From contig JAMWBK010000002.1 of assembly GCA_029953675.1 (NCBI GenBank), positions 2,232,001 through 2,296,000 on the forward strand: a DNA stretch of 64,000 nucleotides, given 5' to 3'. A program made the position numbers and the translations under genes. This stretch comes from Rhodosorus marinus CCMP1338 (lineage: Eukaryota; Plantae; Rhodophyta). The notes beneath the pieces were generated by a model. The model was given only the letters and a program-made list of their open reading frames with translations, had not been told where the DNA came from and made no database searches. The stretch's first letter is position 1; each line of letters opens with the position of its first letter. Shown here piece after piece: positions 883-58,270 of this stretch.

Positions 883-2006
883 ATTTTAGGGACACAATAT
901 CCATCGGGCCAGGATCCTACCACACAAGCAGCCTCACACCCACCAAGAACCCTTTCCAGCACTGGTTACACTGCAGTGGAGAGCCCGAAGATGCTGGAGC
1001 GCATTAGCCTAACTGTGGGTCAACTTGGGACCTAGCGTTGTCCTCTAAATAGGCTTCCTTGTGAATAGAATTCACAGTGCGCTATGTAGAACCAAGGAGT
1101 TAGGTGGAAAACAGTAACGCTTTTGAGTGGGGGAATCATATATGTATGATTTCTACTCAAAAACTATACAGTTGTACTCAATAGCAGATGGAACTGTCCG
1201 GAGCCCTATCCCAAAAAACAGAAACCCAAACAATCGAGTACAGCGATCCAATCGGCCCTGTACGCGGAGAAACAAACGTTCCAGATTCGGTGGCTTATCG
1301 CCGAATCCAACGATCGAGCACGAGCAATCCAATCGGTTCTGCACCGCACCAGGTAAAATAAACGCTACAGAAGCAGTGATGCGTCACTGCATCCCAACAA
1401 ATTGAAAACAGCAATCCAATCCCTTAATTGAACCCTAGCAATTAAGAACTTCAACCCGATCAGTTGCACCAGACTGGGCAAAACAAAGATAACAGAACCA
1501 GTGATCCGTCACTGACTCCCGGCAATGCTGCACACTAATGGTAACCCTAGCGAACGAGTAAGGTGGCCCATCGCCTTCTCCACTGGCGGCCCACCACATC
1601 GGGAAGAACAACAAGCTATAGATTGAATAATCAATCATCATCCCGTTTACAATAGTGATTGATTGAATCGATAATACCACTCGGTTGTGTCGAGTTTTTT
1701 TAGTTTTTTCGTAGGTGTCGTCGCTTTATTGAAACTAATTGGTCGGAGGGTGGTAATCTCGCGATCTCTCGATTGGGTATTGGCTCATTTCCACTCCCAG
1801 AGATACTTATCATTGTCGAATCGTGATGCTCAAGGTTATCATGGAACCTAGATAACTTAAGATGGTTGGATATAGCGCGAAAATAGATTGAAACTATCAA
1901 TGAAATAACCAATAGAAAACATATAAGCCTTTTTATTTTATAATTTCATCAATCTCACCGAGAGGAGCTCTTGAAAAGCGGTTTAAAAAATACTTCCACT
2001 TTCGGG

Positions 2007-2074
2007 AGCTGCGACCGACACCTATCAAAAACGGGCACCGCTCCGGGCGTTTTTGATAGGTGTCGGTCGCAGCT
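2007..2074. repeat. Perfect 27-bp inverted repeat with a 14-nt spacer (hairpin or micro-MITE)
   Basis: agctgcgaccgacacctatcaaaaacg (2007-2033) is the exact reverse complement of 2048-2074. Confidence 0.95.
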
Positions 2075-3269
2075 AGGGGGGTTACGTTAGTCTGAGGGGG
2101 GTTCATGGTCATCGATCAGAGACCGGCTTTTTGAGCAAAATTTGAAGCTTTTCGAACTCTTTCAATGCAACTATGCAACGCCATAACCCCTACACACCCA
2201 CCCCCTCCTCCCCGCTTCGTTTCTTCCACCTGCATTTTTCGGATCTGCCTTTTTGGGTTTGCTGGTAGAAAACAAGTCCAGGGTTCTTAATTGTTTATGT
2301 TTTCTTTCTTTTTTTGGAGTGATGAAGTTCGCGTGGTGGCACCCGTCAAGTGGAGTCAGGCACCGCTGCAACAAAACCAAATCAAAAGGCAGACTGTTTC
2401 TCCTCATCCTTTTTTTTTTTTTTTGACCCACAAGAAGAATTGAAGAAAAAATACTTACGAAAAATGGAAAAAATGAAATATCAAAACCAGTCGAGAGTAA
2501 AACGAAACCCTAGAAATAATAACATATTAAGTTCTTATTTACTCCTAACACTGAAGGTAATGCAAGTTCCTTACCCTGTTCTCATATTCATCCCTACATC
2601 GAGCAACTACTCATTTTTAAGCTATACGATAACATTTTGTGGACTGAAAATGATTCCCGCTTGGTAACCAGGGGGGTGGATGGATTGGTTCGGGGGGGGG
2701 GGGGAGGGAGGTTAGGAACCCCAAACCTAACAGACGATCTTCTTTCCATCATGATCTGAAGTCATGGTCGGATACTATCCTAAACAAGAAGAAATATATC
2801 TAGAATTGGGATCTTCCACGCCGAAAATTTCTTGCCCAGCAAGTAAGAACAGGGGGGGGGGAGGGAGAAATTAGTGTATTGACTAAATAGCTGTAATAAG
2901 GGCAATTTAGAACTAAAACACCAATCAACATAATGTGTACATGGCTGCGGAGGGCGGTTGGTTGGAGGGATGTGGAAGATAAAAAATTAAGAAAAAGGAA
3001 ATTGGGAAGGTGGGCTGGAGGCATATTCAGGACGATTGAATTCTTTAATTATGTTGTGATTCAACATGCTTTTTTTTAGCTTGATTTTGGATGGGGTGAC
3101 ACACCAAGACACCCCCCGGGGGTTGCGAACATGTCGGTTGGGGTTCGGAGTCTGTCTTGGACAGGAACGGTTCTTGATCGATGAAGAAGCTAGAATTAAA
3201 CGAGGCCCATTGAGATGTGAGCGTATGCTGTGAAGCGGGTGTCAGGGGAGTGAGTGTTTGTGTGTGTAT

Positions 3270-4280: not shown

Positions 4281-4905
4281 GAAGAAGAAGCAGAAGATAA
4301 GAAAACTTAAGTATTCAAGTAAATAAAAATAGTATCAATTTAGACCAAAAACCAACAAAGTCCCCTCAGACCAACCGCTCTCACTTCCACAACCCTACAA
4401 TTTGAGGTCATCGCAGCCTTGTCTTGCATCCTTCAAATTGTAGTACTTCGCTTCTCTAACGCCGGCTCTATGCTTAAGACCTGCGCAACCTAAAAGCGTA
4501 GAGTTCACCAAAACTGCAAATGTGCGCTTAAAACCGGCTACCTAACAGCTCCAGATCACCACGATCAACGGGCTTAGCATTCACGGATCGTTCTCTCAGC
4601 ACTTAGGATTGAACATCCACGAGATGTTTCTCTTGACGACTGGTCGCCTCTGGGTGCTCTCGATGACATGCTGTTGAGGTTCACCCCATAAAGCTATGAA
4701 GAAGCCTTCATCGTCGCACACCCAAGCCATTCTTCGGCTTCTTCCGGAATTTCGAAGCCGTAGTGTTTTGAGGGAGCCTCAGACATAGCAACCATTGTTC
4801 GTGGGGAAGGTGAGGGCGTTGTTATGTCCTAGGCGCTGATCTGAGAAAAATAAAGGGCCACGCTTTCGTGCTTGTTTTTTATTTTCTTTGGGAGAGGGTT
4901 TAGGT

Positions 4906-9909: not shown

Positions 9910-12635
9910 ATGGCATTCGCGAACGGACATTTGCGGCTTGAGTTTCGAGGCAGGCGGCTGGCAAACCACAGGAGGAGAAATGGTTTCGTGGTCAGGTCGA
10001 GCGTTTCTAGGGTTGCCTACCTCCCACCAGAGACGCCACCGGCATCTGTAAGCATTGCTTAGTTTTGAAGGATCCCTTAGAATCTAGTCTACACCGTTAC
10101 TGACCTTTTTCGGTGCACTGGTATCAGGCTCCTCTGGAGAAGCATCTTGCACAGTGTCAAAGCATAAACGAGATATGGAAAGGAGTACTGGAGGAGTATG
10201 GAGATAGTATAGCGTTAGTTGATCCTCAGCGAGGAAACGATGAAGGAATTACGTTCGCGCAATTCAAGCAATTGTACAAGAAATGTGCTTCCTCGTTGCG
10301 GAAGCTTGGCCTATCGAAGGGTACGTTAACGAGCTGCTTATTTTTTTCCTATTTTAGTCCTCAAAACCTGAACGGTGTTTGTATTTTTGGCCCGCTAGGT
10401 CAATGCATGTCGGTTTTCTCTGAGAACAGTCTGAACTGGCTCGTTCTCGACCAAGGCCTTCTCAGAAATGGGATGATCAATTCAGTTCGCGGATCTGCTG
10501 CGCCTGTACTGGAGCTCGATTTTATCTTTCAAGACAGTGAAAGCGTAGCCCTAGCTGTACAGGATGCGAAGCTTTTAAAGAAGCTCGAGAGCGCTCTTGT
10601 AAGCCAATCAACGGGTCCAATACCTCGGCAGTAGTTTCTGGAGCTTCTGTATCTCAGTTGAAAGCTTTGCTTGTCCTTTTTGTGTTCCTGTTTCTGCAAT
10701 AGGACTCAGCTGAGGTCAAGTTTGTGATAATCCTGCAAGGTACGAAGACCGCAGAGTCGGCATTTGAAGGATCTGTTCCTGTGTACACCTTCAAAGAACT
10801 TATGGATCTTGGGGAAGAGGACGAAAATCATGACGCGACCGTGAATAAGTCAGACGTAGCGACAATTTTGTATACATCTGGAACAACTGGAAAGCCAAAA
10901 GGTGTACCACTTACTCATGGGAACATTCTCCATCAGGTATAGGTGACCAAAATTCACCTTGCTGACAATCGCGATAATCCCTGCAAATAGTTTGACGTCG
11001 AGCTGTTTTCTCGGTTAGATAGTCAACGTTCGCCTTGGAGAGGCACATCCCCGACCGGAGGGTGTGCTCGTGAGCATTCTTCCGTGCTGGCACATTTTTG
11101 AGAGAACGATTGAGTATATCGCCCTTGCATACGGTACTAAACTGGTGTACAGCAGCATCAAATCCTTTCGGGACGATCTGGCAAAATACCAACCGACACA
11201 CTTGGTCGGAGTTCCGAGACTTTTCGAGAGCCTATACGGGGCTGTTAACTCGAAGTTCACCAGTGGCTCCGCGTTCAAGAAGTCGCTTGTTCAGTATCTC
11301 GTTCAGGCTTCAGGTTCGGGCAAATTGAGAAGTCAATAGATTAAGGGGATATGTAGCTCATTCGCTCTCTTCTGTGCTCACTGTAGAATCGTTTGCTGAG
11401 GCTCGAAGGTATCTACAAGGCAGAGCTCAGGAACCAGTTGATTTGTCTCGAAAGATAGTCTCTCTAGCAACGCTAGCTGCCTTGAAGCCTTTGTATGACA
11501 TTGCCCAGATCCTCGTGTGGGGAAATGTCCGAAGTGGAATCGGAGGAAAGGTAGAGGCTGCTGTTGTTGGAGGCGGATCATTACCAATGTACTTGGAAAA
11601 CTTTTACGATATGGCGGGAATACCTGTCTTCGTTGGCTACGGACTGACGGAGACCTCACCAGTAATTGCTAACAGAGTTCCACGACATAATGTCCCAGGG
11701 AGTTGCGGACTGATTCCAGGATTAACCGATATCAAAATCGTAGATCCAGAGAGTCGGGAAGAAGTGCCGGACGGCCATGAAGGCGTCTTGACTGTCAGAG
11801 GTCCAACAGTTTTCGGCGGATATCACAACCGCCCAGACGCAACCGAGGCATCGTTCGACGCGGATGGATATTTTGATACCGGCGATCTCGCGAAGAAGCT
11901 TGCACAGGGGGATATTGTCCTGACGGGAAGACAGAAGGATCTTATAGTATTGAGTAACGGGGAGAACGTGGCTCCTCAGTCGATCGAAGACGCTATTGCC
12001 GCTTGTCCGTTGATAGAGCAGGTAGGCTTTGTGGCCCATCCCAGACCGGGAGTCTTTGCATTCAAGGACCTTAGCAAGAGCTTGATTTTCGTAGGTCGTC
12101 CTCTGCGGACAGGATGAAAGATTTCTTTCGGCACTAGTAGTCCCAGAATTGAACAATCTAGAAGGTGCGGGCGCAATAGATGCTGAGACGAAGCAAGCTG
12201 CAGAGCAAGCATTTAATAGGTAGGGGTGCCACGAGTTGCAAGCATTCTGAATGGTGCTCGTCACGACGCGAGGCTAAGATAGAACATAAAGCGCTCTTAC
12301 TATCCAGAGTAAGCCGGAACAAGCGTTCTTCAACCGCACACCACTAAGCACAACCCGTTTGTTTCCACAGCGCGAACGCTGACGATTTGACCAAAGCAGA
12401 GGAGGAGTTGCTTTTTAAGACCAAAGACACGTTCCTCCATGCAATTCGAGAAAGAGTTCAGAAGCTTCCCGACTACCAACCCCTGTTCAGAGTGATGAGC
12501 GTTTCCTTGGTGCTGACCCCGTTCTCGGTAGAGAACAACCTAATGACACAAACGTTGAAGATCAGAAAGCAGGAGGTCACAAAGCGATACGTGGAGAAAA
12601 TCAAACACATGTATGAGTCCCATGAGAAAAAGTAA
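9910..12635 (+). CDS. Plastid long-chain acyl-CoA / acyl-ACP synthetase (AAE15/Aas-like AMP-binding enzyme), multi-exon
   Basis: MAF... transit peptide; AMP-binding motif [19 protein letters not shown]; [10 protein letters not shown]; [11 protein letters not shown]; YFDTGD; [17 protein letters not shown]; C-terminal [10 protein letters not shown]. Pieces are separated by GT-AG introns. Confidence 0.9.
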
Positions 12636-13245
12636 TAGCGCAACCGGTTTTTCTTTTTCTTTGAATGCTGCGTGTTTTAATCCACAACCACTCTAACCCA
12701 AACCAAATGAAGTTTTGCACAAGTAAACAAAGAACTTGTATCCCCGAGCTCATTTCGGATAGACGAAGATCAGCAGCGTCGCGTTTCCGATACCAAACTA
12801 GCCACTCTGACATGCACTTACGTATTTCTCAAAAGAAGAAATTGTCTCCAGCCAGTTCAGAGAGTCTGTAACACCAAAGCAAAATCCATTGCCTTCAGCA
12901 CCGATCTCTACGAAATTGAATTTTGTTATAATTTAACACAACGGAAAAGCAAAGTTGAATAATCGAAAATATTTCTCTGTCCATGCTTAAGTATCATCGG
13001 CCGGTGAAGCTGACAGTAATTGAGATGGGATTAAATTAATGAAATACATTTTCATAATGGGAGGTGAAATGGATTGAAGATTTGGATGGTATTTGAGGGA
13101 CTGTTGTCTGAGTGTCTTCGGGATGCGAGGGGAAGGGGGGTGAAGACGAGCTGCTCTGGAGAAAGGAAGGGCATCATATGGTAGAATGTTTTCTTGTTGA
13201 TGAGTAGTCTTGTCGGTACTTTGATTTTGATTTGGAAACATCAGC

Positions 13246-15998: not shown

Positions 15999-16751
15999 TT
16001 AAAGATCCTTTACTTTGTTCGCACCGTTCCATTCACGAAGGACTCGCTTCACAAAGTATACCTGAAGCGCTACATGCGGAATATACACCAACAAGCTGCC
16101 CGCAATGCATTGCCACCGCATGAACTCAAACAACGTCGAATAAACAGTAAGGTGTCGTTGCCATGCGATTGCAAGTACCATATAAATTGGTGGCAGTATT
16201 TGTGCAACGAAGCAAATCAGTGCGATGGCAACGTTCCACATGTTGATGGTCTTCACAGTAAGTAGGCCCGATTTGGACGTTAGCCATCGCATACCCGCCG
16301 GAAGATAGACACAAGCAGATATCAAGAAGATAGAGCTCGGGAAGGCACCTTGTCGTCGTTGGCAACCCGTTATCAATAGGAGGCATGTCACAAAATGATG
16401 GAAAAGCCATCTATCGCGGGACATAAACGAGGGTATAGCCACCAGAGCAGCACTGTCGTACATGTAGTAACCGATAATCACCAGAGAGACATGGTAGTAT
16501 ATTTCCGGGTAAGCGAAAACGTAGTCCTTCTTCACCTCATCGTTGAAGAACAGAATATACACATTGAAGGCCGCCTGTAGCAGATGAAAGGCAATGTTCA
16601 CAATGTAGCAGTTCCAGATTGCGGCGTGTTCCTTTGGCAGACCCTTGTAGACGCCAAATCTCGAACTAACAGCCCTCGAGACAAAGTGACACCATACGAA
16701 GAAGAAAAAACAGCCAACAACAAGCTGGAGCTCATATAAATTCTCCGCCAT
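15999..16751 (-). CDS. TLC (TRAM/LAG1/CLN8) domain membrane protein, 250 aa
   Basis: Intronless ORF with several hydrophobic helices, GYYMYD, and the TLC hallmark WLFHHFV. Confidence 0.8.
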   Translation of the reverse strand: MAENLYELQLVVGCFFFFVWCHFVSRAVSSRFGVYKGLPKEHAAIWNCYIVNIAFHLLQAAFNVYILFFNDEVKKDYVFAYPEIYYHVSLVIIGYYMYDSAALVAIPSFMSRDRWLFHHFVTCLLLITGCQRRQGAFPSSIFLISACVYLPAGMRWLTSKSGLLTVKTINMWNVAIALICFVAQILPPIYMVLAIAWQRHLTVYSTLFEFMRWQCIAGSLLVYIPHVALQVYFVKRVLREWNGANKVKDL

Positions 16752-50058: not shown

Positions 50059-50982
50059 TCACTGCAGGTCTTTGCAGAACAGGAGTTGAGTGCCCGGTAC
50101 GGAGATTACTTGAATTGCCATTCCAGATGAGAGGATTCTCACTGAGTACGCATCTTCGTCTCTCCAGAGGAGACTGTAGCCAAGCTTCTCCTCGTAAAGC
50201 TTCTTCGCGGGTCCGTTTGCGTCCTCAACGATGAGCCAAATATCCTTGAACAATCCTTCATTCCACGTACGGACCTCCTCCTCACAAGCCTCACATAACC
50301 TTTTTCCAAGGCCGAGACCGCGGGCATTTGGCGATACAGCCAGGTTTGACAAAACGGGATGCAGGGAGTACTTTCCTTCCTCTTCCTGCGCATCGAAAAC
50401 TATTGCAGCAACTTCGTGAAGCGGGGACTTCCTCAGCGAATTCCTGACTGGCGCAGACATTGCACCCAGGGTGGAAGAGAATAGTCTCTCCCCTACCTCC
50501 CTTGGCAGCACTTCGTAGGCGCCATTTAATTCCTTGACAACCGCAACTTCGATCCCTACACATCCTAAGATTCCCTGCTCCCCTCTCGCAATGAAGAAGC
50601 TCGTCGACAGCCTTCTCTTCCCAGTTAGTCTTCCATATCTCGAGGACAAATCTTCCTCCTGCTTCGACACAAGTTGCTTATGTGCATCCCCTTTCAGCGA
50701 GGATCCGCCTAGCCCCTCCTTCACATTGTCCGTTGTCGACGCGACCCAGAACGCGTCCACAAAGAAGCTCGCACAGTCCTGCAGCGCACCGTAATCATCA
50801 GTCCTATCAATCACGTACGAATCCGTCACCGATGCCTGTGCCAATACCGGTCTACATCTCCCCCACGATCCAGGACTCCTAAAAACACGAGGCCTAACCC
50901 GACTCACCCGAAACTTCAGCCCGTACCGATTACCCAACCCTAGCCCATAAGCCACAAATCCAATCTTCATCCCCCCGTCCAT
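50059..50982 (-). CDS. Plastid-targeted GNAT-family acetyltransferase, intronless
   Basis: Transit-like MKIGFVAYG..., VLSNLAVSPNARGLGLGKRL (acetyl-CoA binding) and NGPAKKLYE..LGY. Start is ATG 50982 or 50970. Confidence 0.85.
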   Translation of the reverse strand: MDGGMKIGFVAYGLGLGNRYGLKFRVSRVRPRVFRSPGSWGRCRPVLAQASVTDSYVIDRTDDYGALQDCASFFVDAFWVASTTDNVKEGLGGSSLKGDAHKQLVSKQEEDLSSRYGRLTGKRRLSTSFFIARGEQGILGCVGIEVAVVKELNGAYEVLPREVGERLFSSTLGAMSAPVRNSLRKSPLHEVAAIVFDAQEEEGKYSLHPVLSNLAVSPNARGLGLGKRLCEACEEEVRTWNEGLFKDIWLIVEDANGPAKKLYEEKLGYSLLWRDEDAYSVRILSSGMAIQVISVPGTQLLFCKDLQ

Positions 50983-51859
50983 TCCCCCCCTCCCCCCTCC
51001 CACCCCACCACCCCCTCAACACACTCTCAAAACAAAAAAAACAAAACACAGAAACTTTGCACAAAAAGCAAGCCCGAAAAAAAAACAACTTAGTCTCAAT
51101 GTAAAAAATAAATTACTCTCAACTACAATAAACTATTAAGACGCTTATCCAAAAAAACAATGGCCTCAATACTAATCCATAACACACCCTCCCCATCCCC
51201 ACCACCCAACCTCCCCCAAGTCCTCTACACCCTCCTCGTCCACAAAGAAATGAAAACGGCCCAAGTCAGAGATGGTAATCTGCTTGGCATCCGATCTTAC
51301 CATTTTTAACTTCCCTGTTCATCAATAGAATCGATTTAGAAGCTCATCTATTTTTATTTTTAAAACCCTATTTTGAAAAATGGTTTAGGATTCGTAGGCT
51401 CATCTATTTTTATTTTTAAGACCCTACTATGAAAAACGGTTTAGATTGTAATTTTATACGAATTAAAAAATGGAATTGATTTAATTTTAATGTTGGTTTC
51501 ATAGGACATTGCGAAAAGTATTGCAAAAAGAGGATGGGATCCTTTTTGAATGGCTTTTGGGATGGTGGAGACTTCCAATGCGAGTTCGGAGAGAGTGTGT
51601 GTTTGCGGATGGTGTTTTCCTAGAAGGACCCCCCTTTTCGAACTCCTCCCAACAAAGCTTAACCGGCGTTGGAAGTTTGATTTGTTTTATATGACATCAA
51701 CTTGAAACTTGCTAATGGTTTCGAGGATGGTTTCTCTCAGTGGATTTGCATCTCCCACTAACGGACACGAGTCCCGGTCATCGACACACTCCGCTCCTTC
51801 TTCCGCCACGCGAACTTTATGCACAACAGGAAGCAAACCAAGGGGATAGCGGGTTGCGG

Positions 51860-52583: not shown

Positions 52584-54283
52584 ATGGAGGAAGAACTACC
52601 GGAGGTGCAAGAACCTCGAGCCTCGAGTTTCTTGCCGGGGTCCATTGGACTTCCTACAGAGTTTAAGCTTACTGGATACTCTCGCCTGAAAGGGTGAGGG
52701 TGCAAGATTCCGCAGGTAGCCGGGCCGAAGAGTTGTCTTTGCCTCTTGACTTCGCGTTGGATTTCAAGCTTTGTTCTCCCAGGAATTAATCGTTGGTTTC
52801 TCCTTCTTTCGTTCACTGTTTTTTAAATACCCACTCCGCGGCTCGATGACAGGCGGATTTGACTCGCCTGTTGGATCGTTCTGGGATCTCTCAGAACAGA
52901 AAGATGATGGATACATCTGTGATTGAAATCAGAGGCCTACCCAACTATCAACTCGTCTCTACAACGGACTTCTTTTTCCCACTCGTTGATGATCCTTTCC
53001 TCATGGGAAGAATCGCCTGCGCTAATGTTCTCTCGGACATGTACTCGGAGGGCGTCACTGAGGTCGACAATCTCCTCATGGTCCTCGCCGCGTCTCTCGA
53101 TATGCCTCCAAGCTGTCGAGATCTAGTCACCTGGAAAATGATCGAGGGCTTCAGGAGCCTTGCCGAGGAGGCTGGTTCATCGGTTACTGGTGGTCAGTCT
53201 ATCTACAACCCATGGCCTATTATCGGTGGAACAGCTCTGAGCGTAGTTCCAAAGGAGGTGAGAATTTAGGCTGTGAAATCACACTTGAGAGTATGGCCAC
53301 GGACCGTACTCACTCCGTGAATGTGGTGTGGAGCCTATGCTATGGCTCTGGAGCGAAGGTACCCCCCCGTGTATGCACTAAACTCTGAACTAATTCTGTT
53401 CGGGTTTGCTTTTTATTTGTTCGTAGAGGGTTTTAATGCCTACTGGAGCAATTGAAGGGGACACTCTTGTCCTCACCAAACCGATTGGAACTCAAGTTGC
53501 AGTGAATACCTTTCAGTGGATCAACATAGAGGAGAGATGGTCAAGGATTTCGGACGTTATCAGTCGGGAACAGTTAGAGGTGAGTCTTGGAACAGCTCTT
53601 CTTCTCCCTCAGCCAACCCCCCCCACCCGCAACCCTCTTCCTGAAGCCACGTTGCGTTGCCGCTTCTGCTTGTGTTTTCTCGACAGCGCGCTTTCGATAT
53701 CTCCGCGATGAGCATGGAGAGACTAAATCGGAAAGCCGCGGAACTAATGTGGAAACATGGAGCTCATGCGGCCACGGACATAACTGGATTCGGAATTCTC
53801 GGACATGCTGAAGCGCTAGTTCGTAATCAAAGGTACATCCTCTACATTAGCAATCCTCTCATTTAGATTCGAAGCGGGAGCTAACCGCGGGTTTCTGCCT
53901 GCTTGTCCCTCCGCACCAGCGAGTCTGTCTCGTTCGTTATCCACACATTGCCGGTGATACGGTGCATGGCTAGCGTCGACGCCACGCTGCAAAACCTGTT
54001 CAGTCTAGTGAAGGGGCGCTCCGCTGAGACCAGCGGTGGACTATTGATCTGTCTTCCGAAGGAGAATGTGGCGGCGTTCTGCTCCGAGATTTACGAGGCC
54101 GAGGGATGGCCAGCGTTTGTTGTTGGGTAAGCAGGTTGACCAGCACTGGGAAACGCCGTACTGGGAACGGGGAGTATTGACCTTTTCGCGCTTTTTTCGT
54201 TGCTTTGGTGCTTTGGCAGGACGGTGATAAGCGGTGATAGGTCGGCATCTATTGCCGCTGATGTGGAAATCAAAGAAGTTTAA
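52584..54283 (+). CDS. SEPHS2: Selenophosphate synthetase 2, a selenoprotein (Sec38 encoded by TGA 52695-52697), 6 exons, 368 aa
   Basis: Exons 52584-52715, 52853-53257, 53427-53579, 53687-53832, 53920-54126 and 54220-54283 sum to 369 codons. [64 protein letters not shown]. Confidence 0.95.
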
Positions 54284-54291
54284 CACTGAGG

Positions 54292-54390
54292 GTGAGTTTG
54301 TCCTCAATAACGGTTGGTCCTCATGAAGTCCGTTGTTGATGTTCGGCTCAAGCTGCTAGTGTGGACGTCCTGTTTGTTGTTTAACTGTAG
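54292..54390 (+). other. Probable 99-nt intron in the SPS2 3' UTR
   Basis: Donor gtgagt 8 nt after the stop; T-rich tract with ttaactgtag acceptor; length matches other introns in the window. Confidence 0.65.
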
Positions 54391-54412
54391 GTTGCTTCTG
54401 GAACGTGCAGAG

Positions 54413-54481
54413 GTGCATACTATGACGCGTGGCTTCGCAAACCCGGGAGGGGGAAGCCAGAGCTGATCGCTTCTTGTGTAC
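54413..54481 (+). promoter_or_regulatory. Eukaryotic SECIS element, type II
   Basis: Helix I GUGCAU/GUGUAC; core AUGAC...UGAU; helix II GC..GGCUUC/GAAGCC..GC; apical AAA followed by CCC/GGG mini-stem; located downstream of a UGA-containing SPS2. Confidence 0.88.
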
Positions 54482-54846
54482 GGGGCAGGAGCAGTCCTTG
54501 TCCGCCGACCCTTGGGGGGTTCCTCTTTTCCTTTGAGTAGGGTACGTGATCGTTTTTTGTTTTCTTTGTTAGTTGTAACGAACGATGCATGCTCCACAAA
54601 GTCTAGACAAGTTTGTTCTAGGAGAGGTTAAAACCACTGCCGCAAAAGTCGGCCAGGTCTGAATATGAAAAAATCAATAACATAACATACTATTCACAGT
54701 TCCAATAAGCAAGCATTGGAAGACTATTCACAATTCACGGTAGCAAGCTGGTAGGCGTCGGTTTCCTGGGTCAAAGAACAACCTTGACATAGCAGTCGCT
54801 CCCCATCGCGTCAACGATCTTTTCAAGTTTTCGATAAGCGCTGGGG

Positions 54847-57000
54847 CTACAGCGCGGAGGCTTGGCTGTTTTTGTACCTTGGGTCGGTGAAGGCAAAGTA
54901 TTTTCTTGACATGTCGCCGGTTTCCGTCTGTACATCAGCAACTGAGATCCCGTCCACTCCAATTGTCCCCTCCATTGCGGAGACACTGTATCCAAACGAT
55001 TTTAGAGAAGTGCAGACTTCCTCCCAGTAGCTAAACGGTGCGCCGCTGGACCTTCGGAATATTGCCGTCGTCGCACAATCTTCCGGGTGAATGCCCTCCA
55101 TATAGACCGTTGAATTTGAAAGCTCAAACGTCATCCTCGGAGCAGCAATGGCCGTTGCCAGGTCGTCACCATATTCTACTGCGTTCAAGATCGTTTCAAT
55201 CATCGTTTGGGTCGAAGCTGCACCTCCAGCTGATCCGAAAGCAAACTGAACGCGCTTGAAATCCTCGATAACGACAGGGGCCATCCCACTGATCGGGCGA
55301 TTTTTGGGTTTCAATTCGGCGTTGGAGTCAATCGCAAGGAACAACTCGTTGTTCAGTAGGATTCCCGTCAAATTTGAATACAAACCATCGGCAAACTCTG
55401 AGCCAAGCGTCGCCGTGAAAGACACGGCACTGCCTCCGCTGTCGGTAGCAGCGATATGAGTCCCAGCGTAGTTTCGAGCGATCTCTGGTAGAGCCGCCGC
55501 TCTCAAGTTCGAGGGTAAGGTCTCCACTTCCTTTCTCGAAGCAATCTTGAGATTCAAGCCAGCCCGATTAGCCTGAGCATTGTCCTTGTCCAGCATCTTC
55601 TTAATGTTCTCGCTCGACTTATTAGCGTCCGATGTGGGGTCGAACATCATCTCCCAATCTTCAAAGGCAAGCTTCGACGCCTCAATAACGAGATGATAAG
55701 CTAGACCGTTTCTCCCTCTTCTTCGGAGTCGGTAACCTTCCAGTATCGAGAGCGCTTTCGCGAGAATGGCCCCGGATGAGGGCGGTGGTGAGGTCCAGAT
55801 CTTATAGCCATCGATATAGAACGATATAGGGTCGTACTTTCTGGCCTCGTAAGTTTTGAAATCCGATTCGTTCATCTTTCCCCCCGCGGTGTTGATCTCT
55901 TCGCTCAGCTGTTTCGATAAGTTATCGTAAAGTGACTTACTTCCATGCTTGGCAATATCTTTCAATGTCGATGCCAGCTCCGGCGTCGAAGCATTTTCTC
56001 CGGCCTTGAGGACCACGAGCTTGTTCAAGACGATATCGTCGACCTCAGGAATCAACTCATCATTCTCAAAAGGCCTCGTAAAGTACTGCTTGAGCACGTC
56101 ATGCTCGAGAATGTAGTCTGACTTTGTCCGTAACACTTCCGCAAAATGCGGGCTAACCTCCCACTCCTCCGCCAGTTTGGAGACCTCTAGGACGAGAGAT
56201 TTCCACGCTAGTTTCCCATGGGCCTTGTGGAATGTCTCAAGAGCCCGGAGAAACCCTGGTACTCCGACATTTGCTCCTCGAGCGTCCTCTTTCCCAACAC
56301 TAGATTTATCAAAGCCATCGGGAACGTTGACCAGGCCGTCGTAGACCACGGTCTCCTTTTTACCCGCATCGTAGTACAGGATCAACGCGCTTCCGCCTAG
56401 TCCACTTGTATGAGGATGCATCACACCCTGACAAAGAGCTGCTACAACGACCGCGTCAGCTACGCTTCCTCCGCTACTGGTGGCTACTTTGGTGCCCATC
56501 TCAGAACAATGAGAATTATCCGCAGCGACGGCCGCCTGATACCCGCTCTGAGCGGAGACTTCAAGACCCGGGTCGGACGAAGCTCCGGGCGCAACAAGCT
56601 GGGTAGGCGCTATAAGGTTTAAAAGGCTCGGCAGTGCCAGTACGAGCGCCGCAATAATCAGCAGAGAAACCACTCTGAGGAGGTGAGACCAAACCGTATG
56701 GGGATCTGACTCTCCACTCCAGTTCTCAGGTAGATTTCTGTTCCAGAATCGGCGAAATCTGTAATACGCCCTCCCGAGAAGTCCAGGCCTGGTGAGTCTC
56801 TGTGACTGCTGATCCCCGTCAACAGAGTCGTCCGCGGAATACGCGCTAAAGTTCATGCTATCCCTGTCTGTACTTCCCATCCGGACTAAATCCGGCTGGA
56901 TCTCGTCCACCTCCGGATCATCGTTCACAACGACCTCGTACTTCCCCATCAAAATCTTCCCGTTTTCGTCCGTCTCCAAAGCTACCCGAAATACTTCAAC
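54847..57000 (-). CDS. Gamma-glutamyltranspeptidase-like type II membrane protein; catalytic Thr appears replaced
   Basis: TM helix followed by AAVAADN..CSEMG, GVMHPHTSGLGGS, VGVPGFL..L...HGKL.W, TSPPPSSG, IEASKLAF, GILLNNE, PKNRPISGMAP, DPR. Start uncertain: the T-rich ORF start 57093-57001 looks like an intron, and ATG 56949 is a candidate. Confidence 0.85.
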   Translation of the reverse strand, partial: VEVFRVALETDENGKILMGKYEVVVNDDPEVDEIQPDLVRMGSTDRDSMNFSAYSADDSVDGDQQSQRLTRPGLLGRAYYRFRRFWNRNLPENWSGESDPHTVWSHLLRVVSLLIIAALVLALPSLLNLIAPTQLVAPGASSDPGLEVSAQSGYQAAVAADNSHCSEMGTKVATSSGGSVADAVVVAALCQGVMHPHTSGLGGSALILYYDAGKKETVVYDGLVNVPDGFDKSSVGKEDARGANVGVPGFLRALETFHKAHGKLAWKSLVLEVSKLAEEWEVSPHFAEVLRTKSDYILEHDVLKQYFTRPFENDELIPEVDDIVLNKLVVLKAGENASTPELASTLKDIAKHGSKSLYDNLSKQLSEEINTAGGKMNESDFKTYEARKYDPISFYIDGYKIWTSPPPSSGAILAKALSILEGYRLRRRGRNGLAYHLVIEASKLAFEDWEMMFDPTSDANKSSENIKKMLDKDNAQANRAGLNLKIASRKEVETLPSNLRAAALPEIARNYAGTHIAATDSGGSAVSFTATLGSEFADGLYSNLTGILLNNELFLAIDSNAELKPKNRPISGMAPVVIEDFKRVQFAFGSAGGAASTQTMIETILNAVEYGDDLATAIAAPRMTFELSNSTVYMEGIHPEDCATTAIFRRSSGAPFSYWEEVCTSLKSFGYSVSAMEGTIGVDGISVADVQTETGDMSRKYFAFTDPRYKNSQASAL

Positions 57001-58270
57001 CTGTTGCGGACTCGCAACAAACCAGAAAAAAATTGTCACCGCGACGAAAACAAAACAAAAACAAAGAAAGAACCAGAAACAAAAACCTCTCACGTTCGAG
57101 GAAGAATCAAATCCATTCTACAACTGTTCGCGCCTCTGCGAGCTCAGACAATGACCTCGCGCAGGGAGAAAGCACACCTCTCCAACAGCGGGTAAACAAA
57201 ACCAACTCGGAAAAGAGCGCAAGCTTTCCAACATCCGATCTCCAACGCAAAATAGCCCTGTCTCCCACGCTCTCAACAAAAATTGTCAACGGTATTAACA
57301 ACGGTCCGTGGGGACAGCGATGGTTGCGACTTTGCGGCTTCAACCAAAGCAAACAGCACCAAATGAATGTACTTCAACAAGGTCTTATAGATTCCAGGCT
57401 TTGCTCCCCAAGAAGAAACTTCGATCTCTACGCTTACACTTTGCCTGGGCTTCCGCATTAGACTGAAGGAGAGGCTGAAGTGGATCAGACACTTTCTAGT
57501 GAACCGTCGTTGAGAAGGTTGTAACCTAAAACAAAGGATCTGAGCTGATACTGCTTCCTTCTCAGACTGCATTTTGCTGTAGTGCAGAAGGCAACTCCGG
57601 GAAGTGCCTTGATGGACCGAGTGCGATGGATCGCGATGGATCGCAATGAATCGCTTGCTTGCGCTCTCACTGGTTGGTGACATTCCTGCTCAACCATGGA
57701 TTGGCTTTCTGGTGCAACCTTCGCAACGTGCTTATGCGTGAATCGCTGTCTTGTTGGTTCCTTGAGAGTGCTTGTAGACAACGGCTCTCAGTCGAGGCCT
57801 AGATTGATGCATTCCGACCTCTCTAGTCTGATCAACCTCTGATAATGTTCGCCTACCTGAAGAAGATGGACTCTTTTTTCACATGCTTGAAAACGGGCGG
57901 TACACGAGTTCTCCCATGGTATTGATGGACGCATGTTTGTGTTGCTTAGAAGCACCGATTAGCTTTATCGTATGCAAGTGCCTGGAACGAACCGAGAGCG
58001 TTGAGCTGATCTACCCCGCGCGGGCATGTCCGCTCTGAAGCCTTGAACGGCGCCTCGTCCGTCTTGAGGATGGCATATATGTGCCTCCTGCCTCGTTCAC
58101 GGGTGGATGAATCCTCGTGAGCTGGGGACAACTCTTGAGTTGTGTACTGTTGACGGTTTCGCCACCGTCTGTTGTTGACGCACCAGCTTCATCTGCAGAC
58201 GTATGCCTTCGACACTCTTCAAGTACGAAAAACTGATGTTTTAATCCACTTTTCGAAATCGTGCTCAATT

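Follow-up and report, generated by a model that had tools for sequence, protein, structure and literature searches.

Red-alga selenoproteomes are very small (PMC7539508). The selenocysteine (Sec) machinery is complete in some red algae, and its total loss was reported for the three Bangiophyceae-Florideophyceae species examined (PMC6627142). A Sec-containing SPS was predicted with Selenoprofiles in the red alga Porphyridium purpureum, which belongs to neither Bangiophyceae nor Florideophyceae and carries Sec in the motif ...SKLKG-U-ACKLPQ (supplement of PMC6627142). Rhodosorus is placed in the Stylonematophyceae (PMC10250338). Our literature search found no paper linking Rhodosorus with selenoproteins. 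Here we analyzed a 64,000-nt stretch of the Rhodosorus marinus assembly GCA_029953675.1 (contig JAMWBK010000002.1), referred to as the window. Downstream of an SPS2 gene, a hairpin at about 54404-54482 on the plus strand is, judged from its sequence, in all likelihood a form-2 SECIS element of the R. marinus SPS2 mRNA. An earlier note had claimed a SECIS element of type II layout in the SPS2 3′ UTR, and the claim is borne out by the position on the sense strand, by spliced transcript contigs and by a syntenic ortholog. The hairpin is thus very probably a genuine 3′ UTR SECIS element and an ordinary case of a long-known RNA signal. The type of element is thoroughly known; what is new is the Rhodosorus SPS2 SECIS, which was unannotated until now.

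We compared the locus with the described systems. Like the eukaryotic elements of Rfam SECIS_1 (RF00031), the Rhodosorus hairpin belongs to the 3′ UTR of an mRNA that contains a UGA; it likewise has an AUGA...GA quartet, about 10 bp of helix II, an AAA that is unpaired and stands 13 nt away from the core, and a mini-stem on top of the AAA, with helix I beneath an internal loop. Unlike that family, it is GC-rich (57%), scores 17 bits against a threshold of 35, and has a helix II interrupted by one 1x2 internal loop and one bulged G. Its 5′ internal loop is probably long (9–12 nt) if the distal helix I described below is used, and its AUGA is unusually near the stop codon, at 39 nt past the TAA in the spliced mRNA (138 nt in the genome). 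With the SECIS elements of protist SPS2 genes, taken from our calibration set of 80 eukaryotic SPS loci on environmental contigs (L006-L085), it shares the gene, the UGA position and the form-2 design; many of these elements have AUGA, 11–13 nt, AAA and a mini-stem of 3–7 bp, whereas their primary sequence is unalignable outside the motifs. A second red-alga element (L001) has AUGACGC...GCUGAUC in common with the Rhodosorus element and displays compensatory changes. The Porphyridium SPS shows the same AIRS + AIRS_C clade III architecture but comes from a different red-alga class, and was compared by protein, not by SECIS.

The SPS2/SelD gene spans 52584-54283 (+) in six exons, with five coding introns of 87–169 nt that are all GT..AG. 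It encodes 368 residues, and the reading frame contains a single TGA, at codon 38. The protein scored 229.8 bits against TIGR00476 (selD equivalog, cut-off 125), matched both PF00586 (AIRS) and PF02769 (AIRS_C), and was similar to human SPS1 structures (3fd5) with E=5e-106. In alignments, the UGA falls on the Thr of LKG-T-GCKVPQ in human SPS1 and on the Cys of LKG-C-GCKLPQ in a Phytophthora protein. By these alignments it occupies the classical Sec/Cys position of the catalytic N-terminal glycine-rich loop. The motif could be located in 62 SPS loci, and 61 of them have TGA at this position (59 of 60 when the two related algae L001 and L002 are excluded). Upstream of SPS2, a GNAT-family acetyltransferase ORF of 314 aa (PF00583) is present at 50059-51003 (-).

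A single-protein SPS2 query of metagenomes found no relatives, and the Rhodosorus transcript contigs were reached through protein-cluster members. One of them (L002) is a contig from a cultured-alga transcriptome of a strain closely related to the R. marinus of the window. It contains the fully spliced SPS2 coding sequence, collinear with our gene model across all 1107 nt and with the UGA kept. The 37 codons before the UGA differ between the window and L002 by 4 synonymous to 1 non-synonymous changes, and this region is therefore coding. L001 is the syntenic ortholog of a more distant alga, with 61% identity in SPS2 and 47% in the convergent GGT gene, and reads ELKG-U-GCKIPQ; the in-frame UGA is conserved in both contigs.

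The best protein match of SPS2 is itself from Rhodosorus marinus, at 93% identity, and is a 307-aa ORF beginning at the Met past the UGA. The deposited model KAJ8907890.1 (JAMWBK010000002.1; L003 3001-4700) represents the same locus, as the 589 nt that were compared are identical to the window. It encodes 334 aa with the junction MEEELPE|IPQADL, so that 34 residues with the UGA and the catalytic loop are spliced out, and because of this SPS2 has gone unannotated as a selenoprotein. One could therefore argue that the hairpin is a chance look-alike and that the UGA is never decoded, being either spliced around as in KAJ8907890.1 or bypassed by a start at the later Met. The omission of the UGA stretch from the deposited model, the 307-aa product given by ORF callers on transcriptomes and the sub-threshold Rfam score of the SPS2 element all point in this direction. 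However, the spliced contigs of the two related algae keep the UGA stretch in frame with protein conservation on both sides, and the deposited splice would remove the conserved loop GLPxEFxLTxxSxLKG-U-GCK, which can be aligned to solved SPS structures. The SPS2 SECIS is also conserved in the orthologs, which argues against a look-alike, and an equally strong motif is hardly expected by chance (see below). We consider this reading very unlikely. The deposited model is wrong, since the UGA-bearing stretch is retained in the transcript contigs of related algae, and our gene model corrects the public one, in which the catalytic Sec loop had been deleted to avoid the UGA. In Galdieria phlegrea, the SPS model (P0038, alignment columns 40-60) is also without the G-U/C-GCKxPQ stretch (FSRLK------EQ), and a UGA may be spliced around there too.

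The features of the SPS2 gene and its SECIS element are listed in Table 1. The 69 nt at 54413-54481 (GUGCAUACUAUGACGCGUGGCUUCGCAAACCCGGGAGGGGGAAGCCAGAGCUGAUCGCUUCUUGUGUAC) are the span that the earlier note had assigned to the element, and all motifs it had described (AUGA, helix II, AAA, CCC/GGG, UGAU, GUGCAU and GUGUAC) are present where it had placed them. The 5′ AUGA at 54422-54425 is followed by C, is matched to the AUGA of Rfam SECIS_1 and stands, at the sequence level, opposite the 3′ GA of the quartet. Helix II is composed of 2 + 7 + 1 bp (about 10 bp) with one 1x2 loop and one bulge. Its outer pairs are G54427-C54463 and C54428-G54462, followed by the 1x2 internal loop; further inside, U54430-C54436 pairs with G54453-A54459, and C54438 with G54452. 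This length agrees with the spacing range of roughly 9–12 bp of SECISearch-type descriptors. In the mini-stem CCC 54442-54444 pairs with GGG 54449-54451, and together with the AAR in the bulge this extra mini-stem corresponds to form 2. With RNAfold, the MFE and centroid structures each contained helix II as well as the mini-stem. The folding energy of the isolated 86-mer was no better than that of its shuffles (z = +0.28). The mRNA carries UGA at a known Sec position, and the element occupies the sense strand of its 3′ UTR.

Table 1. Positions of the SPS2 gene features and of the parts of the predicted SECIS element, counted from the first nucleotide of the window.
Feature	Position	Strand	Evidence
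SPS2 exon 1 (Met1 to Gln44), carries the Sec codon	52584..52715	+	gene model; L002 collinear
Sec codon TGA, residue 38, SRLKG-U-GCKIPQ	52695..52697	+	gene model, alignments
SPS2 exon 2	52853..53257	+	gene model; L002 collinear
SPS2 exon 3	53427..53579	+	gene model; L002 collinear
SPS2 exon 4	53687..53832	+	gene model; L002 collinear
SPS2 exon 5	53920..54126	+	gene model; L002 collinear
SPS2 exon 6: CDS end 54283, TAA 54281-54283, and first 8 nt of 3′ UTR	54220..54291	+	
3′ UTR intron, 99 nt, GTGAGT...TGTAG	54292..54390	+	absent from L002 and L005; GT..AG; size typical for the gene
Whole SECIS element (probable extent)	54404..54482	+	SECIS_1 match, descriptor, pair probabilities, structural alignment
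Helix I 5′ strand, preferred register (CGUGCA..AG)	54404..54412	+	pairs with 54474-54482; first four pairs 0.99-1.0
Alternative helix I 5′ strand GUGCAUA, more likely 5′ side of the internal loop	54413..54419	+	pair probability ~0
AUGA, 5′ half of non-Watson-Crick quartet (predicted SBP2/kink-turn core)	54422..54425	+	invariant in window, L002 and L001
Helix II 5′ strand: GC, unpaired G, UGGCUUC, bulged G, C	54427..54438	+	pair probabilities 0.6-1.0
AAA, unpaired, 13 nt past AUGA	54439..54441	+	conserved in L002; AAAA in L001
Mini-stem (helix III) CCC/GGG with GGGA loop, form-2 feature	54442..54451	+	pair probability 0.59-0.68
Helix II 3′ strand: G, GAAGCCA, unpaired GA, GC	54452..54463	+	folding, structural alignment
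UGAU, 3′ half of quartet, GA at 54465-54466	54464..54467	+	SECIS_1 match; CGAU in L002
Helix I 3′ strand (UUGUGUACG)	54474..54482	+	descriptor, alignment, pair probabilities
Predicted outer stem, 3′ strand, 14 bp	54486..54499	+	pairs with 54288-54291 + 54391-54400; MFE and centroid of spliced UTR

The register of helix I is ambiguous. GUGCA is present twice (54405-54409 and 54413-54417), and either copy can pair with GUGUAC at 54476-54481. The two registers are mutually exclusive with a common 3′ strand, and helix I lies below the internal loop. For the helix I proposed originally, GUGCAU/GUGUAC, both strands are present and complementary, and seven consecutive pairs are possible in the 54413-54419 register, but pairing with the upstream GUGCA copy is more likely. 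When the partition function was calculated in the spliced UTR context, the distal register reached 0.99–1.0 and the 54413-54418 register about 0. In L002, the substitution 54407 G>A changes a G.U into an A-U pair of the distal helix I, and 54476 G>U changes a G.G mismatch into G.U, after which the distal helix I has 8 contiguous pairs. Taken together with 54413 G>C, these substitutions break two pairs of the 54413-54418 helix. These models suggest that helix I is probably formed by 54404-54412 with 54474-54482 rather than by 54413-54418 with 54476-54481. As the distal register is favoured both by thermodynamics and by the L002 substitutions, we placed the element at about 54404-54482; the span claimed before falls within it, but the likely extent is wider.

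To estimate how often such a motif arises by chance, both strands of the window (128 kb) were scanned with a descriptor that combines AUGA, spacing, AA, GA, an anchored helix II and helix I. It matched the SPS2 site and one weak site only. The latter, 16584-16642 (+), reads ATGA...AA...GA with a helix II of -9.1 kcal/mol and is at chance level. Forty dinucleotide shuffles gave a mean of 1.45 descriptor matches per window and 0.05 as strong as the SPS2 site. Scaled to the 564-nt stretch past the gene, about 2e-4 equally strong motifs are expected by chance, in disagreement with the look-alike reading. The descriptor is specific but not sensitive, because it recovered a SECIS in 16 of 47 independent Sec-SPS2 3′ UTRs.

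At the Rfam gathering score no SECIS match was found in the whole window, and in an E-value scan of 301 nt SECIS_1 was not listed, having been dropped by filters. On the 79-nt stretch SECIS_1 was the best among 4227 families, with 17.0 bits and E=0.33 (2 strands). The alignment of 54414-54480 covers the model at full length (1-64/64), and AUGA, AAA, the mini-stem and UGAU all coincide with their counterparts in it. After rescaling to a single family, the E-value becomes about 0.06 for the whole window and about 3e-4 for the 564-nt stretch past the gene. The score remains below the gathering threshold of 35 bits. Among 20 independent protist Sec-SPS2 SECIS elements, however, none reached 35 bits with SECIS_1; the best had 31.1 bits and at least 9 were below about 21. 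The Rfam threshold is therefore uninformative for the protist SPS2 group. Failure to score with covariance models had been named in the earlier note as grounds for giving up the SECIS, and it is non-discriminating here because the threshold misses 20 of 20 protist elements. Four of these 20 protist SPS2 3′ UTR elements were listed under SECIS_5 (RF01991), not SECIS_1.

We also built small covariance models of our own. R1 (7 sequences) and R2 (15 sequences) were derived from AU-rich protist SPS2 SECIS elements. In a form-2 seed of 7 environmental sequences, 94% of helix II was paired and 8 of 10 pairs covaried. On the window, R1 and R2 left the SPS2 site unranked (10.4 bits locally), with chance matches elsewhere scoring higher. 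Neither L001 nor several SECIS elements that the descriptor had detected were found by these models, and we therefore attribute their result at the SPS2 site to low sensitivity and do not count it against the SPS2 SECIS. Their top matches in the window were 13027-13092 (+), with 15–16 bits and E of about 1, and also 4732-4763 (-). The former is an AU-rich SECIS-like sequence (AAUGAA...UGAA) about 900 nt past an AMP-binding-enzyme ORF (11374-12117); no in-frame TGA gene was identified there, and the match is probably due to chance. A third model, R3, was built from the red-alga elements. It detected no second SECIS in the window, where its next best match had 13.5 bits, and nothing in the 80 foreign SPS loci. 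Hence the suggestion that the element could seed a lineage-specific model holds in part: such a model can be built, but it can only be used within close relatives. We read these results as a failure of the small SECIS covariance models to carry over from one lineage to another, whichever way they were applied, and counted them as not supporting the SECIS call. For such organisms, a descriptor used together with gene context is preferable to a cut-off on covariance-model scores.

Next, we compared the element between the related algae. Identity between the window and L002 is 95.7% in the SECIS core (54422-54467) and 92.2% over the whole element, and 83% with indels in the UTR further downstream. 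The three substitutions within 54420-54475 fall in the internal loop, in the apical loop (54446 G>U) and at the N of NGAN, and the paired nucleotides of helix II and the mini-stem are all unchanged. In L001 the element begins 72 nt past the stop codon (AUGAC-GCA-A-UGUUUC-G-AAAA-GCAC-ACAUA-GUGC-G-GAGACA-A-UGC-UGAU) and scores 14.6 bits with SECIS_1. Relative to L001, two pairs of helix II differ, one through a compensatory double change and the other through a single substitution after which pairing is still possible. In a structural alignment of the window, L002 and L001, which was hand-fitted to the structure, N-padded (A10) and comprises three sequences of which two are near-identical, 98.4% of cells pair and 8 pairs have both partners replaced; 5 of these are in helix I, 2 in the mini-stem, which is GCAC/GUGC in L001, and 1 in helix II. 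On this hand-fitted three-sequence alignment, the structure is kept in the orthologs with compensatory changes. MAFFT alignments of the window with L001 (A4, A6) had helix II out of register and were discarded.

The conservation could also reflect another function of the hairpin, as a kink-turn site for an L7Ae protein, as a 3′-end or stability element, or as a buffer of the overlap between SPS2 and the convergent GGT gene. The whole SPS2-GGT intergenic region is indeed fairly conserved (83–92%), contigs joining SPS2 and GGT cover the hairpin region, and the hairpin is predicted to be enclosed by a long outer stem. In contrast, the SECIS signature (AUGA, 12–13 nt, AAA, mini-stem, GA) is kept in the 61%-identity ortholog while the paired sequence changes, the mRNA that carries the hairpin also has a conserved in-frame UGA, and no Rfam family fits the hairpin better. 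Such a function in place of Sec recoding is therefore highly improbable, and we retain the reading of the hairpin as a SECIS element.

The region between the stop codon and the SECIS contains a 99-nt intron. The segment 54292-54390 is spliced out in L002 and L005 and kept in an isoform (L004) from the same sample of the related strain. This is a genuine 3′ UTR intron, spliced in the sense orientation 8 nt past the stop. The SECIS-bearing exon starts at 54391, 13 nt ahead of the element, and the L002 and L005 contigs continue through the SECIS. This exon start argues against polyadenylation upstream of the element, the event that the earlier note had named as incompatible with its claim; the spliced contigs do carry the element, but they are unstranded assemblies that read on into the convergent GGT gene and leave the poly(A) end undefined. 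The predicted outer stem that would enclose the SECIS spans the exon junction, can form only after intron removal and is less perfect in L002. It seems unlikely that retention or splicing of the 99-nt intron is regulatory. If it were, splicing would bring the SECIS to about 20–40 nt from the stop and allow the 14-bp outer stem across the junction, and the intron could tune the Sec-insertion efficiency or the mRNA surveillance of SPS2, which produces the selenium donor, according to selenium supply.

Based on the established eukaryotic Sec pathway, we infer how the element would act. Once the five coding introns and the 3′ UTR intron are removed, it would lie about 20–40 nt past the TAA and about 1 kb past the UGA. 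The AUGA/UGAU tandem G.A core would fold as a kink-turn and bind SBP2, which would bring in eEFSec with Sec-tRNA(Sec). By analogy, the UGA in SRLKG-U-GCKIPQ would then be decoded as selenocysteine, and the enzyme of 368 residues would carry Sec in its N-terminal catalytic loop.

R. marinus expresses SecS (O-phosphoseryl-tRNA(Sec) selenium transferase; P0131, E=5e-148). A tRNA gene search within the window detected none, hence no tRNA-Sec. Least probable of all is a relic, in which UGA and SECIS were inherited while Sec decoding is being or has already been lost in this strain and the gene is effectively inactive: red algae do have very small selenoproteomes with the machinery lost in some clades (PMC6627142, PMC7539508), but there is purifying selection both before and after the UGA, the two strains share a conserved SECIS core, SecS is expressed, and the SPS2 introns and reading frames are all intact. 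With a functional SECIS as the preferred reading, Rhodosorus, a member of the Stylonematophyceae, is predicted to be a Sec user, which fits a total loss of the machinery confined to Bangiophyceae-Florideophyceae. The SPS2 SECIS is one anchor from which the few other selenoproteins encoded by the R. marinus genome can be sought.

The gene on the other side of the element encodes GGT (gamma-glutamyltranspeptidase, PF01019). It lies at 54847-57093 (-) and converges on SPS2, with the two stop codons 564 nt apart. A SECIS that forms part of this convergent gene was rejected, as the element is on the wrong strand and the GGT ORF of 748 codons is uninterrupted. Transcript assemblies fuse SPS2 and GGT, which suggests that their 3′ ends overlap. 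The convergent arrangement is also present in L001 (GGT at 1493-3118 (-)), despite the 61% identity of its SPS2.
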